NCBI GenBank assembly: GCA_004431415.1 | Contig: QPMI01000184.1 | Coordinates: 62,001-126,000, forward strand | DNA: 64,000 nucleotides | Reading direction: 5' to 3' | Source of the DNA: Cyanophora paradoxa CCMP329 | Lineage: Eukaryota; Plantae; Glaucophyta | Shown: positions 3,001-10,250 of the stretch, piece after piece | Layout of the letters: every line of letters starts with the position of its first letter | Numbering within the stretch: position 1 is the first letter of the stretch | The notes under the pieces: model-generated | Database searches by the model: none | The model's input: the letters and a program-made list of their open reading frames with translations, nothing else | What the model was told of the DNA's origin: nothing | Program-made: the position numbers and the translations under genes

Positions 3001-6000
3001 GAGGAGCGGGATCAGCTGGTCGAGCTGCTGTCCGACCTCGACATACTCGCCAGACTCGGCACAGACGGCGCGCGGCACGAGCTGGTGCAACTGTGGGTGC
3101 AGAGCGCGCGGCAGAAGGAGGCGGCGGGGCGATACACGGCCGCAATCGACAGCCTCAAGGAAGGCGACATATCCGGTCACCTGCTCAACGCGTCAGAATT
3201 GCTGCGGGCTCTCGGAGAATACCAAGACGCAGAGCCGATTTGCAGGGTACGTAGTCTGCGAGATGCCGCTCTGTATGTTCTAATGATGGATGTGCAGCGG
3301 GTTCTTGAGATGACAGAGGCGGCGGGCGGCGATAGTACGCAGACCGCGACGGCTCTGCACAACCTCGCTTTCCTTCTACAGCTGAGAGGCAAGTACGGCG
3401 AGGCCGAGCCCCTCTATATGGTGCGTTCGTACCGTCCGGGTGACTCAGTGACGGGCAGGAGCTGATGTGTCTTGCAGAGGTCCCTCGAGATCAAGGAGGC
3501 GACGCTCGGCGAAAGTCACCCGGAGGTCGCGAAGACGCTGAACGAGCTCGCGCTGATGCTGGGGGCGCGCATCCAGTTCGACAAGGCGGAGCCGCTCTAC
3601 AAGGTGCGCACACACGCTTCGAGGTCCAGCTACGTGGAGATGACGGCGAGTCGCGCGCGCAGCGGGCCCTGGCGATTCGGGAGGCGGCGCTCGGCGAGAG
3701 TCACCCGCTGACGGCAACCGTGCTGAACAATCTCGCGTTGCTGCTGTTTTATAGGCGCAAGTTCGACGAGGCAGAACCCCTCTACAGGGTGTGTGAGCGC
3801 TGCGCGGGAGTTGACGTCGTCAGCTGCAGGCAGCTGACGGCGACTGCATCGGGATCGCAGCGTGCCCTGGCGATCCGGGAGGCGGCCCTCGGCGAACTGC
3901 ACACGGACACAGCGACGTCGGTCAACAATCTTGGCGTCCTTTTGGTGGAGAAGAAGAAGCTAGACGAGGCAGAGCCGCTCTACAGGGTGCGCATGCCCGC
4001 GCAGCACTCAAGGGCCGGGCCGCTGATCTCGGATGCGGCTGGGCCGCGCAGAGAGTTCTGGCGATCAAGGAGACGACCGTCGGCCCCAACCATCCCGACA
4101 CTGCAATGTCTCTCCACTGTTACGGCAGGGGTGATTCCTAGCCAAATCCGGCGCCGAGCTAGTGTGAGGTGATCCGGCTACGTAGCCTATTGGATAGGAT
4201 TCTCGCCATCGTGACATGGGGGCTGCGAACGGACCATGGTTCGACTCCCGGCAGAGCCCGGGTAGTGCGAACGGACATGGCTTCGAACCCACGTGGGAGA
4301 ATTCCGGACTTAGTCCGAAGCACGATTCGGCGAGGACGCCTCATATGTGCTGGCCCGGATGTTACGGCAGGGGTGATTCCTAGCCAAATCCGGCGCCGAG
4401 CTAGTGTGAGGTGATCCGGCTACGTAGCCTATTGGATAGGATTCTCGCCATCGTGACAAGATGTTGAGCTAGAAATCCCCCCTCCTGGTGCCCTAGGGGT
4501 GGCACGGGATTCTAGACAACAGGTTTATAGAGTGACTCTGACCTGCAGTGAGTGCAAGACCGGCCCCAGCGTGATGCAGGTTCAGCAGTATGACAGTACT
4601 CGTAGATTTGATCCGACAGAGTTTCACTACTCTAGTCTCTCTACTAGGCCGATCTCCGGGAATGGCAAAATCCCTCTAAACACACACGCGCCGGGCTCTT
4701 AAAGCCCTCACGCTGTCCGTCCGAAGCTCTCATGATCAGATCATATGATCCGGTCAGACGGCTCAGACATATGAAAAGCAAGCCGCTGGATTCGAACCCG
4801 AGTCTCCAAGTACGCCGAAGCGAACTGCCGGAATTGAACCCGGATCTCTACGAACGGCAAATTCTCTAAGGCTGCAGCCGCCTAAGATTTCGCCCGCGAC
4901 CGTCGGACATTCGTCGCAGCAGAGAAAAGCCGTCCTCGGCGCCTGCTACCCCGCCCGCGACGTTCGTCGCAGCAAAATGCGAGGCCTAGCATATGTAAAC
5001 GTAAATCAGGTCCTGAAACCTCAGTACCACGAAGAGGTCAGGCCAGAAAATATATATGGATACGTATACGAAATCCGACACTGAAGGCTGCAAAAGCAAA
5101 GCCCTCTGAGAACCTCGGAAATGCTTGCGTGCGAAATTCAGAAGACGAGTATAATGAAAAGTGGCCGAGGCGTTCTAACGCCCTGACGACCCTAGCAGCA
5201 CGAAGGCTGCACTAAATCTAGCAGCTCGAAGGCTGCACTACCTAAATCAGAGAAAATCAGAAACTGGCAGAATATAACTGAAGCTTCACATCTAGAGCTC
5301 AGAAAATATTTCCGAAGCTCATGTTCAAGCTAAACTCAACGATATAAAATCGCGATCACGATCAATATTCTAAAATAAGAATATTGAGATATCGATCGGA
5401 AATCGAACAGCTCAAGCTGCGTACTACGGTACTGCTGCTTGGCTGCGAGCTCGAGCTCGAGTCGCTGCAGATGCTGCCTTACTCGCCGCGCGCTGCGGTT
5501 GATATGTACATGTACATGTACACGATTTGTACAAATGCTTCGAGCTCCAGCTGCGGCTGCCATGAATAACGCCGACAGCTGCATACATACGCGTTGCAAA
5601 TGCGAGAAACGCAAGTATGTATAATGAGAGGTCGCTGCAAGGTGCGGCTATGCTTCAATCAGCATTGCCAGCACGACTCTCTCGACGAGGGGCAGTCTTG
5701 ATTTGGGAATGACAGCGCCCTCGTGGACTTGCCGTGGACGTTGGCCTTGCAGACGCCGCTGCTCCTTCAACGTCGGCGAAGTCTGGCCCCTCCGGCCTGC
5801 GTCTGAATCTGTAGACGGCGAGAAAACGAGGGAGCCCTGTACATCCAAACGCGGGCGCCGCCGCGATGAGTACTTCCAAAATTTCCGCTCGTGATCTCTG
5901 AACCGCCTCACAAGATCCTCCGCCGTTCGACCCGAGAATTAAATTGCGGCCGGACGCACAGCTAAGGTGACGGTTGCTGTGTGCCCGCCGGCGGTAGGTG

Positions 6001-9000
6001 CGATTGCACGTCGAGTCCGAAGACCCAGAAGGTCCGCCGGGGATGCTCTATCCTCCGCCGGGTCAGGAGCACGACCAGCACCGGTGCCGACTGCAGCCAA
6101 CGCTGAGCGACTTCCACATGCCTCAGTCGTCCCCTCCTTGAGTCCTTGCTCAAGTCGAAGTCCGTGCATCAAGTAACGAGTCACATTCCGAACCCGCTCT
6201 ACAACGCCACGTACTTTCTTGAACTTGTCTCCCTGCGGCGACGACGACGTTGAGCTGACGTCCGTCTTGTGCAGGGCCGATTCCGATCTCGTCGGTTGGG
6301 TGTCGACCGGCCTTCTGCTGTCCACAGCGCCCTCCTGACACGAGCAGGTCCGCGCCTCGAGCTTGGCCTCGGGCATCTCACCCTCAACGGCCGTCCTCCC
6401 GTCCGCAGCTGTCTTCAGCGCCCTCCTGGGTTCTTCCCATCTCGGGCAGGTCCGCGCCTCGGCCGTGGACGCCGGTTCATCGGATCGGAGCGACGCCTCT
6501 TCCAACCCCGGAAGTAGGCCTCCTTCCTCGCAAGTGCCACCCAGCACCGCGAAGCTGCCACCGCTCCGCCCACAACTTGAGAAGTGCAGCTGAAGATTAC
6601 AAGTATACGCCACCACGTCGCAGGGACCACACCCCTCTTCGCGACGATATAAATCCTCATTCCTCCTCCGCCGGGCCGCTGGTCTTTTAATTCGCTTCAC
6701 AGGCGGAGACCGAACCGCCATGGCGTATACTTTTACTTCGCGCCCGCCAGACTGCCGGAGCTCCGATATCGATATTTCTCGAGCTCCTGCTGACAGGCTG
6801 AATATTGCACTTGCAACTGATCCAACTCCCGCTGAAGTCGCTTGCTGCAAACGGCAGTGTTGTGCGAGCCGCTCTTGCATTCATCGCACCAACGAGGTTG
6901 TCCGCCGCCCTGACTTGAAATTAACTTCAGCTTCTTGCTGTCGGGCTCGTCGACTTCGTCCTCCTCGAGGCGATGACGATCAGGGAAGGCGGAAAGTTGA
7001 GCAACAGGAGCTCTTGCCGCTGCAGTAGAAAATTGATTGTCGGTCCTTGCTTGCTGCAGTCGAATCTCGAGTGCGTTGCGCGACCGAACTCGACTGAAGA
7101 ATTCGCGACTCCACTCCGAGGCTCCGACAGATTATTTTTTGAGCCCTCCGGAATTTTACTCGTGAGCTTGATCATCGCCGGTGAAGTGATTGAATCCGAC
7201 GACATTATTTCCGCGATCAACATCTCGTCGGAGAACGAATCTTGAAGCTGGAGTAGACGACGAAGAAGAACGACATTATTTATAAAAGCTTGCGCATCCA
7301 GTTCAGATGGATTTTCCAGCGCAGAGAAGCGACGTCCCGCCGTCTTGATAGTGTTCTTCAGAAGCTCGAATTTGTTGTCAGGCACCAAGCCGAGCAGGTG
7401 CTCACGAATTTGTGCCCACGACGTCATGTCCAAGTCGCCGTTGCCCGACTTCGTATTCATGACACCCAGCACAGCCGTCGAGAAGGATCCATGCACCGGG
7501 TCACTTGTCGAGCGCTGCAGCGAAGACAGTGCAAGCTCTGCCAACGTCTTGTCGGGTTCTGTGTATGTCGGAGGCCGGATACAAATTGTTAAACGTTCCA
7601 GCGACTCGACCCACGACAGTACACCCGTACGCGTATTAGTCAAAGGAGGAATTTTCTCCTTGAATTCTCGCAGTTCGTGGTGACGTGCTTGCATGTCCAG
7701 GTTGCCAGTTAACGCGTCCAGTGCGTTCTTCAACGCGTTCTCGACTGTAGCAGCGGCTACCGCTGCCGGGGCCACAGCATGGGCAGGCGCCGGAGCTGGT
7801 ACCGGTGGTGCAACTGGAGCCGGGGGCGGAGCTGGCGCAGGCACAGGATCAGGCACTTGCGCTCCATGGCCAGCCGCCCCGTGACCGCCGCGTCGGCCGC
7901 CGCCCCTGCCCCGTGTACTTGAAGCCATGGAGAACTTGAGCTAGACACGTCCGCCCGCCGGTCGATTCAAGTGAGGCCCGCGCGCCCCTTGAGTTCGAAT
8001 TCAGACGTCGACTCGTGTGCACGACCAGTCGCAGATCTAGAGAGCGAGCCTCCGAGGCTTGAGAGTTGCGAGTTCACTTGCAACAGCACTAGCTCCACTA
8101 GTACAGAAGCTTAAGTTCGCTCGGCCTCGCAGTGAAGCGCCAGCTGCGCTTGCCGAGAGTCGCCCACGGTCGACGGTCAACCGTCTCCCCGCGGCCGCGG
8201 CCGCGCCGCGCGCAGCCTCCCCGCCGGTGCGCCGCCGCGCGCGCGCAGCGACACGCCCAGCGCGCCGCGACCCCCGATCGCGCGCCCGCCGATGCGCCGC
8301 CCGCGGCCGGCGCCGGCGCGCACGCGCTCGCAGGCTCGAGCTCCCGGCCGCAGGTCCGCCGGCGCGCAGCCGGGATCCGGATGCCGGCGCGCGCCCTGGT
8401 TCCGGATCCGGCGCTCCGGCCCGCGGTGCTCCGCGCGTGGATCCGGATCTCGCGCGAGGTGCAGCGCCGCGCCGCGCCGACGAGCCGCCGATCTACAGCG
8501 CCAGCCCGGTCTGCAGTGCAGACGCTGCGACGAGCGAGCGACGATCAGCCCTGCGACGCGCGCGAGGCGCCTAGATCTAGAGCCTCTAGAGCCTCGGCTA
8601 GCCGCGACGTCGACGTATTCGCTAGTGGCGCCCGGTGCGCGCGCGCATGCGCTGCGCTAGCAACGCCGGATCCAGGGCCCAGCGCTAGCCCCGGTCGCGA
8701 CCCCCGGACGGATCGCAAAGGAATGTATACGCATCTTTAAGAGCCTCGCGATGGCGCTGGCGGCAGCGTCCGCTCATGATCACCCGCGATAGGTTGCGCC
8801 GAGCGGGAAGGGGTTGAACGAATGCGCGAAACGGTTCTGGTCAGCGCACAGCGAGTTCTGAAGGCACAGCGACTATGCGCATCAAATGAACGCGAGGCGA
8901 AGCTCGCTCGGCTAGCTCGTAGAGCCAGCGTTCGCGTTTGAGCAGCCCCCAAGATGTTGAGCTAGAAATCCCCCCTCCTGGTGCCCTAGGGGTGGCACGG

Positions 9001-9660
9001 GATTCTAGACAACAGGTTTATAGAGTGACTCTGACCTGCAGTGAGTGCAAGACCGGCCCCAGCGTGATGCAGGTTCAGCAGTATGACAGTACTCGTAGAT
9101 TTGATCCGACAGAGTTTCACTACTCTAGTCTCTCTACTAGGCCGATCTCCGGGAATGGCAAAATCCCTCTAAACACACACGCGCCGGGCTCTTAAAGCCC
9201 TCACGCTGTCCGTCCGAAGCTCTCATGATCAGATCATATGATCCGGTCAGACGGCTCAGACATATGAAAAGCAAGCCGCTGGATTCGAACCCGAGTCTCC
9301 AAGTACGCCGAAGCGAACTGCCGGAATTGAACCCGGATCTCTACGAACGGCAAATTCTCTAAGGCTGCAGCCGCCTAAGATTTCGCCCGCGACACCACAA
9401 CCTCGCGTTCCTTATGATGAAGTGGCAGAAGTACGATCAGGCCGAGCCCCTCTACACGGTGCGCAAGCTCGAGCCAGCCTTCTCATGATCAGTCGTGCAT
9501 CTTCACGCCTCGTTGAACGGCCGCGCAGCGAGCGATTGACATAGCCACGTCGGCGCTCGGAGAAAACCACCCGGACACTCGCAACTTCAAGAACAGTCTG
9601 GCCTATATGCGCGATCGGATGCGCGAATCCGAGTCCAGCGGCGTCCAGGAGTCCGCGTGA
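1..9660 (+). CDS. Multi-exon DUF4062-NACHT(P-loop)-TPR protein (NPHP3/TEP1-like); 5' end upstream of the window; interrupted by the retroelement insertion at 4118-9394
   Basis: Spliced translation gives RVFLSSTFQDM...VDLRWGIT...VLRLCLEEVERS...FLKRRYG...RSATELEI (DUF4062), Walker A VVGTSGCGKS (~1587-1617), Walker B-like LVLAIDALDQL, and kinesin-light-chain-type TPRs (HP.TA..LNNLA.L....K.DEAEPLY). Stop TGA at 9658-9660. Confidence 0.85.
4118..4458 (+). mobile_element. TRIM (terminal-repeat retrotransposon in miniature), 341 bp
   Basis: Two identical 99-bp LTRs (4118-4216, 4360-4458) with TGTTACG...CGTGACA ends; PBS TGGGGGCTGC directly after the 5' LTR (4217-4226); 143-bp non-coding interior. 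Confidence 0.9.
4462..9394 (-). mobile_element. Non-autonomous LTR retrotransposon (probably Ty3/gypsy-derived): gag-like ORF, no intact pol
   Basis: ~440-bp LTRs at 8955-9394 (5', TGTCGCG...TCAACA on the minus strand) and 4462-4900/4909 (3'), identical by eye over 439 bp; minus-strand PBS TGGGGGCTGC at 8951-8942 after a TCT spacer. Confidence 0.88.
6927..7928 (-). CDS. Gag-like protein of the LTR element (intronless, 333 aa)
   Basis: Intronless ORF downstream of the PBS in the element's sense orientation; basic/Pro-rich N-terminus, then helical capsid-like motifs SWVESLE and SWAQIREHLL. Confidence 0.6.
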   Translation of the reverse strand: MASSTRGRGGGRRGGHGAAGHGAQVPDPVPAPAPPPAPVAPPVPAPAPAHAVAPAAVAAATVENALKNALDALTGNLDMQARHHELREFKEKIPPLTNTRTGVLSWVESLERLTICIRPPTYTEPDKTLAELALSSLQRSTSDPVHGSFSTAVLGVMNTKSGNGDLDMTSWAQIREHLLGLVPDNKFELLKNTIKTAGRRFSALENPSELDAQAFINNVVLLRRLLQLQDSFSDEMLIAEIMSSDSITSPAMIKLTSKIPEGSKNNLSEPRSGVANSSVEFGRATHSRFDCSKQGPTINFLLQRQELLLLNFPPSLIVIASRRTKSTSPTARS

Positions 9661-9959
9661 ATTTGATAGACGGCCTCACTAGGCTCTAGGTTTGCCTCGT
9701 CCCACAACCTCCCAATTACCCCCTTCCATGTCTCGCCCGCAAAGCTTGATTAGCTAGTTAGCTTCCCGCAATCTTACTAATTATAAGTTACCCCTTCCAC
9801 ACTCTAGAAGATTTGCAATAGAAATGCATGCCTCGATCAGCTACCGCTACCGTAGCTACCGTAGTACAGCGACCGTCGGACAGCTGTGAGCACCTGCATG
9901 CAAAAAGGTCGATTGATTTTTGTAAAAGGTACCGGTCTTAACAAGTACGCCGGGCGTGA

Positions 9960-10250
9960 GACGCGAGGGAAGGGAGGGAGGGAGCGAGCTAGGGATCCGG
10001 AGGGAGGGAGGGAGGGAGGGAGGGATCCCCCGGAGGGAGGGAAGGAGGCGGGAAGACGCCAGCGGCCGCCCTCTTGCTGCCCCGGCCCGCTCTCGCTTCG
10101 ATCGAGCGGAGAGAGGAGAGGAGAGGAGAGGAGATGAGAGGAAACCACTTTGACGGCTCGCTCAGAAATGGAGAGGAGAGGAGAGGAGAGGAATGGATCC
10201 CCGGAGTGGAGAGGAGAGGGGACGATCGATCGCGAGGAGAGGGAAAGAGG
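9960..10250. repeat. Polypurine simple repeats (GGGA)n and (GAGAG)n
   Basis: Runs such as ggagggagggagggaggg and gagaggagaggagaggagagg. Confidence 0.8.

Follow-up and report, generated by a model that had tools for sequence, protein, structure and literature searches.

Two different LTR retroelements lie tail to tail inside a TPR gene in the 64-kb stretch of DNA analysed here (the window), and a single target-site duplication (TSD) encloses them both. Element A, on the plus strand (4118–4458), and element B, on the minus strand (4462–9394), meet at their U5 ends across a 3-nt linker, AGA (4459–4461); each structural statement that the initial annotation had made about this two-element layout was reproduced from the sequence. 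We consider it probable, at roughly two chances in three, that the pair records one aberrant integration event carrying two different full-length retroelement cDNAs.

The two elements

Two separate units in opposite orientation can be told apart: each has a pair of identical LTRs, has termini of the form TGT...ACA and carries beside its 5′ LTR a PBS-like 10-mer ending in TGG. Element A is 341 bp long and without an ORF. Its direct LTRs are short and identical and have TG...CA ends, which fits the size and LTR criterion for a TRIM; the TSD of its own that a TRIM should also have is absent. The 99-nt 5′ LTR (TGTTACGG...CGTGACA; 4118–4216, plus strand) is identical at 99 of 99 positions to the 3′ LTR (4360–4458, plus strand), whose U5 end, ...GTGACA, is complete, and a terminal inverted repeat, imperfect and about 28 nt long, is present in the LTR. 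Between the two copies lies a non-coding internal region of 143 nt (4217–4359, plus strand) that opens with the PBS-like 10-mer TGGGGGCTGC (4217–4226, plus strand), directly abutting the LTR (...GTGACA) with no spacer, and the sequence immediately upstream of the 3′ LTR, ...GCTGGCCCGGA, is only weakly purine-rich. The putative PBS ends in TGG, as expected for a tRNA ending in ...CCA. A search with ARAGORN for a cognate tRNA gene returned 0 tRNA genes within the 64-kb window, and no Rfam family matched the internal region or any other part of 4000–9500.

Element B is 4.9 kb long, lies on the minus strand and has a gag-like ORF, pol being absent. Its 440-nt 5′ LTR (sense TGTCGCGG...CTCAACA; 8955–9394, minus strand) is followed, in minus-strand order, by a TCT spacer and the PBS-like 10-mer: ...CAACA, then TCT (8954–8952), then TGGGGGCTGC (8951–8942). 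The 3′ LTR (4462–4909, minus strand) matches the 5′ copy at 439 of 439 positions (4462–4900 against 8955–9393), after which come an 8-nt insertion (4901–4908) and the terminal base (4909). The identity claimed earlier for both LTR pairs thus stands in full for A and for these 439 positions of B, while the left B LTR has 8 extra nucleotides at its U3 edge. Since neither pair has accumulated a single substitution, A and B are equally young. The insertion is borne out by a gap-free contig from run X15 that spans 4636–4957, and contigs of family members that lack the 8 nt run out in loose ends before 4906 (runs X1 and X14, among the matches listed). Our best reading of the pair does not account for this insertion at the U3 edge of the left B LTR, which counts against it.

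The gag-like ORF of B (ORF1; 6927–7928, minus strand) encodes 333 aa without a zinc knuckle. It is called gag on account of a homologue, P0001, one relative returned by an exhaustive HMMER search (51% identity, 197 aa), which does have a zf-CCHC knuckle, and of a lead from Atlas (Retrotrans_gag/Ty3_capsid). Pfam searches of ORF1 and of ORF2 (5939–6880) gave no domain and no pol, word-index protein searches gave nothing close, and an exact look-up had neither ORF1 nor the ORF crossing into LTR A on record; the AlphaFold model of ORF1 (pLDDT 42) is too poor for use. Between ORF1 and the 3′ LTR lies a degenerate region (5916–6894, minus strand) with 70–84% DNA-level homology to the related contig L001, where the matching stretch spans the 3′ end of the L001 gag gene and continues into the neighbouring ORF; a pol domain was not found in this region. 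Considering its LTR pair, its PBS and its lone gag ORF, which are what defines the class, B can be assigned, as a reading of the sequence, to the gag-only, non-autonomous, TR-GAG-like LTR retrotransposons.

A and B share the PBS 10-mer and weakly alike termini; no further significant similarity was found between them, the single LTR alignment being weak (z about 2.5). Because A has no ORF and B no pol, both must borrow the enzymes of a helper, and the common 10-nt PBS, together with the faint likeness of the termini, suggests that they may have used the same helper or particle.

The target site, the host gene and the junction

The outer ends of the pair are exact: the sequence TGT... begins at 4118, ...ACA runs to 9394, and CCAC stands on either side. 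Sequence reading and flank comparison agree on the two copies of this 4-nt TSD (4114–4117 and 9395–9398), which are the only flank match (k = 4) under any combination of boundaries. That one TSD serves the whole pair, as had been proposed, was confirmed by the separate search for each element, which came out empty: A alone is flanked by CCAC on one side and AGAT on the other, and no 3–6-nt duplication surrounds either element by itself, nor B taken together with AGA. By our own arithmetic, a 4-nt TSD would match by chance about once in 256 times and the trinucleotide AGA about once in 64.

The left part of the gene that received the insertion consists of TPR_12/TPR_10 repeat exons (3465–4117, plus strand; TPR_12 E = 4e-19), which the insertion splits, and its right part resumes from 9399. 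Excision of 4118–9398 restores a gap-free, in-frame TPR exon unit of 42 codons, collinear and gap-free with three paralogous units upstream; when both CCAC copies are retained, the reading frame is shifted. The pair thus has, as a whole, the exact TG/CA outer ends, the short TSD and the precise empty site of an integrase-type insertion. Among the joints listed from Logan contigs of 4 sequencing runs, no empty-site contig appeared. One joint, which goes back from 9463 to 4000, was considered as a rearrangement and rejected, a paralogous TPR repeat in the left flank being the best explanation for it.

Where the elements meet, the assembly, which is the one source for this junction, reads ...CGTGACA-AGA-TGTTGAG. 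The linker AGA is the reverse complement of the TCT that separates the 5′ LTR of B from its PBS, and A has no such spacer, both as first described. The earlier equation of the linker with the spacer of B needs one amendment: AGA does match, and the identity of the two B contexts extends leftwards to a run of 5 nt, not 3 (CAAGA; 4457–4461 and 8950–8954). Judged against the LTR–PBS spacer at the 5′ end of this very copy, then, the joined end of B appears to retain TCT beyond its LTR.

Proposed origin of the pair

From this anatomy we infer the enzymes involved and the sequence of events. A and B would each have been reverse-transcribed to complete linear DNA. Integrase would have made a concerted insertion of two U3 ends, one from A and one from B, into the TPR gene at a single CCAC target with a 4-bp stagger, and host end-joining would have sealed the distal U5 ends of the two elements together. 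At the time of sealing, both ends would have been full length, and that of B would still have borne TCT, three nucleotides that normal integration does not carry along. The join may have been blunt or made through a 2-nt CA/TG overlap; as the identity covers 5 nt (CAAGA), a microhomology join is as possible as a blunt one. Either order of the steps is conceivable, in that a heterodimer could have been ligated first, or a mixed intasome could have left a break in the chromosome that was repaired afterwards, and the product would be identical. The initial annotation had two unprocessed U5 ends joined before the dimer went in through its U3 ends; the complete U5 ends, the lone TSD and the restored host exon uphold the join itself; ligation before integration is one of two orders that would lead to this product.

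Since AGA equals the U5–PBS spacer of B and the last base of A is present, both joined ends look like the termini of linear DNA that has yet to integrate. Integrase cuts on the 3′ side of the conserved CA (PMC1636480), and unintegrated linear cDNA is circularised by host repair (PMC5618025). Integrase may nevertheless have acted on the U5 ends, because fill-in synthesis can restore an end that has been processed, and AGA would be mere LTR sequence if ordinary B 3′ LTRs regularly end ...CAACATCT beside host DNA. A search of the literature for a precedent of such a pair found none, which is weak evidence either way.

Alternative explanations

Could the pair be one instance of a regular process? 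In such a process, two non-autonomous RNAs would share one particle of a common helper and both be fully reverse-transcribed, the intasome would pair ends across molecules and dimers would form recurrently, yielding U5–U5 and U3–U3 joined hetero- and homodimers with single TSDs and, in the extreme, a heritably mobile composite. We regard this as doubtful. Copies of A or B beyond the pair were sought: blastn found no second copy of either inside the window, exact-pattern scans of viral_contigs gave 0 and 0, a pattern scan of metagenome_contigs gave 7 loci that blastn showed to be all chance matches, scans of genome_contigs gave 0 and one chance match in an Acidobacteria MAG, and a protein-guided scan of viral_contigs found none.

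Integrase might not have been involved at all. A chromosome break with 4-nt 5′ overhangs could have captured the cargo, either a pre-ligated A–B linear dimer or two cDNAs, and fill-in of the overhangs would then have produced the CCAC duplication. The inner junction is certainly a product of end-joining, and yeast breaks reportedly take up cDNA and other linear fragments. However, the outer ends of the pair stop exactly at TG/CA with neither loss nor filler, and an exact duplication of fixed length is a hallmark of integrase, whereas capture events usually give deletions or microhomology and no TSD. Capture at a break is accordingly an unlikely source of the pair.

An error of assembly, in which sequence between A and B was collapsed or misjoined, has to be weighed as well, given that repeats lie on both sides of the junction and that no read or contig crosses it among the matches listed. 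One would not expect a misjoin, however, to coincide precisely with the ends of two complete LTRs and to leave the 3-nt spacer of B in the gap. Whatever the sequence in the middle, the left end of A and the right end of B are tied to one host site by the outer TSD together with the restored exon, and contigs from other runs reproduce parts of B exactly, its private 8-nt insertion included. We consider such an artefact very improbable.

The initial annotation had also raised a stable bipartite element. Its two halves would move together as a composite family, and beside each of the outer LTRs there would be a PBS that faces inward. The lone TSD and the perfect outer TG/CA ends are indeed what a single unit would show, and the 10-nt PBS is common to both halves. 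Against this, the halves stand in opposite orientations, so that no single transcript holds both in sense, and besides the weak LTR match (z about 2.5) the PBS is all that they have in common. No second copy of the composite lies within the window either. Exact pieces of this copy of B (6049–6625), among the matches listed, have depths of 103, 65 and 41 in runs X1, X14 and X18, where the flank contig has 88, 56 and 25; diverged variants of B reach 5–7 times that depth, again among the matches listed. The depth of the exact pieces is what a single copy would give, and not what a composite undergoing amplification would give. Because LTR-type reverse transcription could not reproduce such a unit, and because the exact B pieces stay near single-copy depth, a bipartite element is highly unlikely.

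Two successive ordinary insertions, nested or double, at or beside one site and followed by a small rearrangement, are a further alternative. Double insertion at one target is documented for several TEs, inverted pairs of LTR elements included, and it leaves a copy of the target within the junction (PMC5932611). The junction described here holds AGA, not a copy of the CCAC target, which excludes nested or double insertion in its ordinary form, and no TSD of 3–6 nt suits either unit alone. The subsequent rearrangement would have to be a very unlikely deletion, one that took away the middle copy of the target exactly, left both element ends complete and happened to leave 3 nt equal to the spacer of B, which makes this course of events very remote.

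Three further candidates were rejected: template switching keeps polarity and cannot yield elements that stand tail to tail, insertion of A into the cDNA of B or of B into that of A is at odds with the absent inner TSD, and DIRS/Ngaro-type split repeats do not match the repeat layout seen here.

Relation to known systems and implications

The joint between A and B resembles a 2-LTR circle junction of retroviruses and LTR retrotransposons, in that complete cDNA termini abut, bases distal to the conserved CA are kept and host repair, not integrase, would have made the joint. A circle junction, however, joins U5 to U3 within one molecule, whereas here U5 is joined to U5, the ends belong to two elements, and the joint is chromosomal and accompanied by a TSD. 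In in-vitro integrase assays, concerted (full-site) integration proceeds from two separate donor DNAs with identical ends. The likeness to the A–B pair is that ends of different molecules enter one staggered target with a duplication of fixed length; the differences are that the pair would be a natural product formed in vivo, that its U3 ends come from unrelated elements and that its free distal ends would have been repaired.

More than one element's worth of sequence inserted as a single unit is also what complex LTR elements display. Those formed by template switching lie head to tail. In them, two parent sequences are fused during reverse transcription, and complex elements share an LTR (Sabot and Schulman 2007, PMC1950507), while the A–B pair is tail to tail, has four LTRs from two unrelated families and shares none. 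Double insertions likewise set two elements side by side at one site, but keep the target copy that the A–B junction lacks (McGurk and Barbash 2018, PMC5932611). As for the elements taken singly, A is TRIM-like in being a tiny LTR–PBS–LTR unit with no ORF, and B is TR-GAG- or BARE2-like in combining LTRs and a PBS with a gag-like ORF while lacking pol. TRIM and gag-only (TR-GAG, BARE2-like) LTR elements are non-autonomous. A and B depart from both in lacking TSDs of their own and in their weak polypurine tracts.

If our reading of the pair is right, the chromosome would have preserved a natural event in vivo in which integrase used the ends of two molecules for one concerted insertion, and in which untrimmed cDNA ends of different molecules were joined in the manner of a circle junction; as a rule, both processes are seen only in vitro or in by-products that lead nowhere. 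Complete cDNAs of two different parasitic LTR elements would have been present together in time and place, which bears on the sharing of helper particles by non-autonomous elements. The evidence points to a one-off product, an instructive oddity and not a new system or a new kind of mobile element, and its value would grow with more such pairs across the genome.

Architecture of the pair and its target site

A TPR_12/TPR_10 repeat gene is interrupted by two repeat-bounded units set tail to tail, a 341-bp TRIM-like unit on the plus strand (A, 4118-4458) and a 4,933-bp LTR unit on the minus strand (B, 4462-9394), and the three bases AGA that separate the last base of A (4458) from the first of B (4462) are the reverse complement of TCT, the spacer between B's 5′ LTR and its PBS. 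This tail-to-tail (U5 to U5) layout, including the identity of the linker with B's own spacer, was reproduced as the initial annotation had described it, and the observation of the pair, as assembled, is confirmed. Read on B's sense strand, the 5′ LTR (right-hand copy) terminates in ...CTCAACA; next come TCT and TGGGGGCTGC, the latter being the sequence with which the interior of A opens directly, A having no spacer between LTR and PBS. A's inner (U5) end is complete, and B's retains its three spacer bases. The sequences adjoining the two LTR B copies agree for 5 nt to the left (CAAGA); the leading CA terminates LTR A at the inner junction and, at the other copy, is complementary to the TG of the PBS.

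CCAC stands on both sides of the pair (4114-4117 and 9395-9398). When every other combination of boundaries was checked for 3-6-nt duplications, none was found: A alone is flanked by CCAC/AGAT, B alone by AAGA/CCAC, and B plus AGA by GACA/CCAC, so that the single TSD claimed earlier for the whole pair holds. Exon units of 42 codons make up the host gene, and a GTG donor follows the ...AEPLY(R/K/T) with which every unit closes. Excision of 4118-9398 yields the unit RVLAIKETTVGPNHPDTAMSLHNLAFLMMKWQKYDQAEPLYT, which aligns gap-free to three paralogous units just upstream, and keeping both CCAC copies shifts the reading frame; the gene has therefore gained precisely the pair and a single CCAC. Chance agreement of 4 nt as the source of the CCAC duplication (~1/256) is not realistic. 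The host TPR array is periodic (3500-4117 and 9399-9600), with short introns starting GTGCG or GTGTG at a spacing of 185-198 bp. The window averages ~70% G+C and the interval 4001-10000, which holds the pair, 54-62%, making the pair distinct in composition from most of the host DNA.

Origin of the pair

In LTR reverse transcription, minus-strand synthesis begins at the base adjoining the PBS, and any bases that separate the conserved CA from the PBS therefore form part of the linear cDNA end. Because B keeps its three bases and the spacerless A end is complete, the A-B joint matches the product expected from ligating two full-length U5 termini that had not been trimmed. Passages of one source describe how integrase cleaves 3′ of the conserved CA, the bases beyond being lost on integration (PMC1636480), and passages of another describe 2-LTR-circle junctions as made by host repair from unintegrated linear cDNA (PMC5618025). 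The A-B joint follows the same logic as such junctions but is U5-to-U5 and links two distinct elements. At its outer ends, the pair has exact TG/CA and a 4-bp duplication, the integrase signature. On this reading, ordinary B insertions would be expected to lack the TCT, and the usual TSD of the family would be 4 bp.

The most economical account is one event, in which integrase would insert the U3 ends of both elements at a single staggered target and the two U5 ends would be sealed to each other by end-joining. It is possible that an A-B dimer was ligated first and integrated afterwards. In the other order, ends from different molecules may have been integrated by a mixed intasome, and the cell would then repair the broken chromosome by sealing the free U5 ends to each other; we find this second order attractive because repair would then be obligatory and the ends tethered, yet the sequence is compatible with both. 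The earlier proposal that unprocessed U5 ends were joined and the U3 ends inserted is partly supported by the complete U5 ends, B's retained TCT and the exact outer TG/CA with TSD; the joining may have come before or after integration. Furthermore, a processed U5 end could later have been filled in again, and it therefore does not follow that integrase never touched it. A blunt join and one via the 2-nt CA/TG microhomology, both envisaged at the outset, are equally compatible with the 5-nt CAAGA identity.

The initial annotation's alternative, a stable bipartite element, is unlikely as a self-propagating unit both on mechanism, as no transcript carries both halves in sense, and on abundance, as exact pieces of this B copy lie close to flank-contig depth in three sequencing runs examined as Logan contigs (103/65/41 for the piece 6049-6625 versus 88/56/25 for the flank contig in X1/X14/X18). 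Diverged B variants reach ~5-7 times the depth of the exact pieces. Integrase-free capture at a staggered break would require the coincidence of exact ends with an exact 4-bp duplication, and we regard it as improbable; an assembly artefact at the junction, for which a misjoin would have to fall precisely where two complete termini and B's spacer meet, is likewise improbable. Double or nested insertion is excluded by the lack of a target copy or second TSD at the inner junction, where double insertion leaves a target copy (PMC5932611), and template switching, which in passages of PMC1950507 yields complexes sharing an LTR, cannot produce a tail-to-tail layout because it preserves polarity.

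No further copies of A or B were retrieved from the contig collections searched, and the literature searched held no description of a heterologous U5-U5 pair. Among the joints listed for the Logan contigs, none corresponded to an empty site, although contigs are unable to demonstrate absence. A one-off co-integration, in either order of steps, is a largely reasonable reading, and the pair represents known machinery giving an uncommon product, not a new kind of element.

Features of the two elements

Element A is laid out like a TRIM, with very short LTRs and a PBS-like TGG 10-mer but without an ORF. Its LTRs (4118-4216 and 4360-4458, plus strand; 99 nt each, TGTTACGG...CGTGACA) enclose a non-coding interior of 143 nt, and its polypurine tract is weak. 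For its PBS, ARAGORN found no cognate tRNA gene in the window. LTR A also carries an imperfect terminal inverted repeat of ~28 nt (TGT[T/C]ACG...GA[T/A]TCCTA.CC; 4118-4145 and 4431-4458), far exceeding the usual TG/CA. Two GGTTCGANNCC-type motifs resembling a tRNA T-arm or B-box lie in the interior of A (4236-4295, plus strand), and two more lie in U3 of LTR B (4785-4850, minus strand); neither ARAGORN nor Rfam made a call at these sites. Beyond the 10-nt PBS, no likeness between A and B is significant (best LTR-LTR local alignment score 23, z ~2.5). TGT begins all four termini, and A's U5 end weakly resembles B's U3 end (p ~0.04).

The identical LTR pairs reported initially stand for A (100%) and for 439 nt of B (4462-4900 and 8955-9393, minus strand), but not at B's U3 edge, where the left copy (the 3′ LTR) has 8 extra nt, CGTCGGAC, at 4901-4908, one base inside the U3 start. 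This is the sole difference between the two LTRs (on the plus strand, ...CGCGAC-CGTCGGAC-A on the left and ...CGCGAC-A on the right). In X1 and X14, contigs from other members of the family read ...CGCCCGC|GACATTCG and lack the 8 nt, which are present in a gap-free contig from a further run, X15 (4636-4957); the family LTR therefore begins TGTCGCGG. The 8 nt are an insertion private to this copy, beside the plus-strand priming site, and may reflect a slip there, since CGTCGGAC is in part like the preceding CGACGAATGTC.

The most fitting description of B is a non-autonomous LTR element that bears gag and lacks pol. Its 333-aa ORF (6927-7928, minus strand) has no Pfam match, and exhaustive searching with HMMER yielded a single relative, P0001 (51% identity across 197 residues), a 522-aa protein with a CCHC zinc knuckle and the only detectable relative of B's gag. 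A language-model look-up gave a lead to Retrotrans_gag/Ty3_capsid clusters (0.89). The evidence for gag is good yet falls short of proof, the fold model being unusable (pLDDT 42). Downstream of the ORF, B 5916-6894 shares 70-84% DNA identity with the matching part of the 4.4-kb Logan contig that encodes P0001 (L001, 1-4416, from ERR10034898), and Pfam detected no pol domain in this interval of B. The ORF downstream of the P0001 gene on L001 has no Pfam domain and matches B's degenerate region at the DNA level; L001 may itself be a pol-less element. Between PBS and gag, B's leader (8130-8700) has an extremely high G+C content and contains overlapping palindromes based on GGATCCGGAT and CGCGCG, in contrast to an AT-rich stretch (5280-5400) and a TGTACA microsatellite (~5505-5530) near B's 3′ end.
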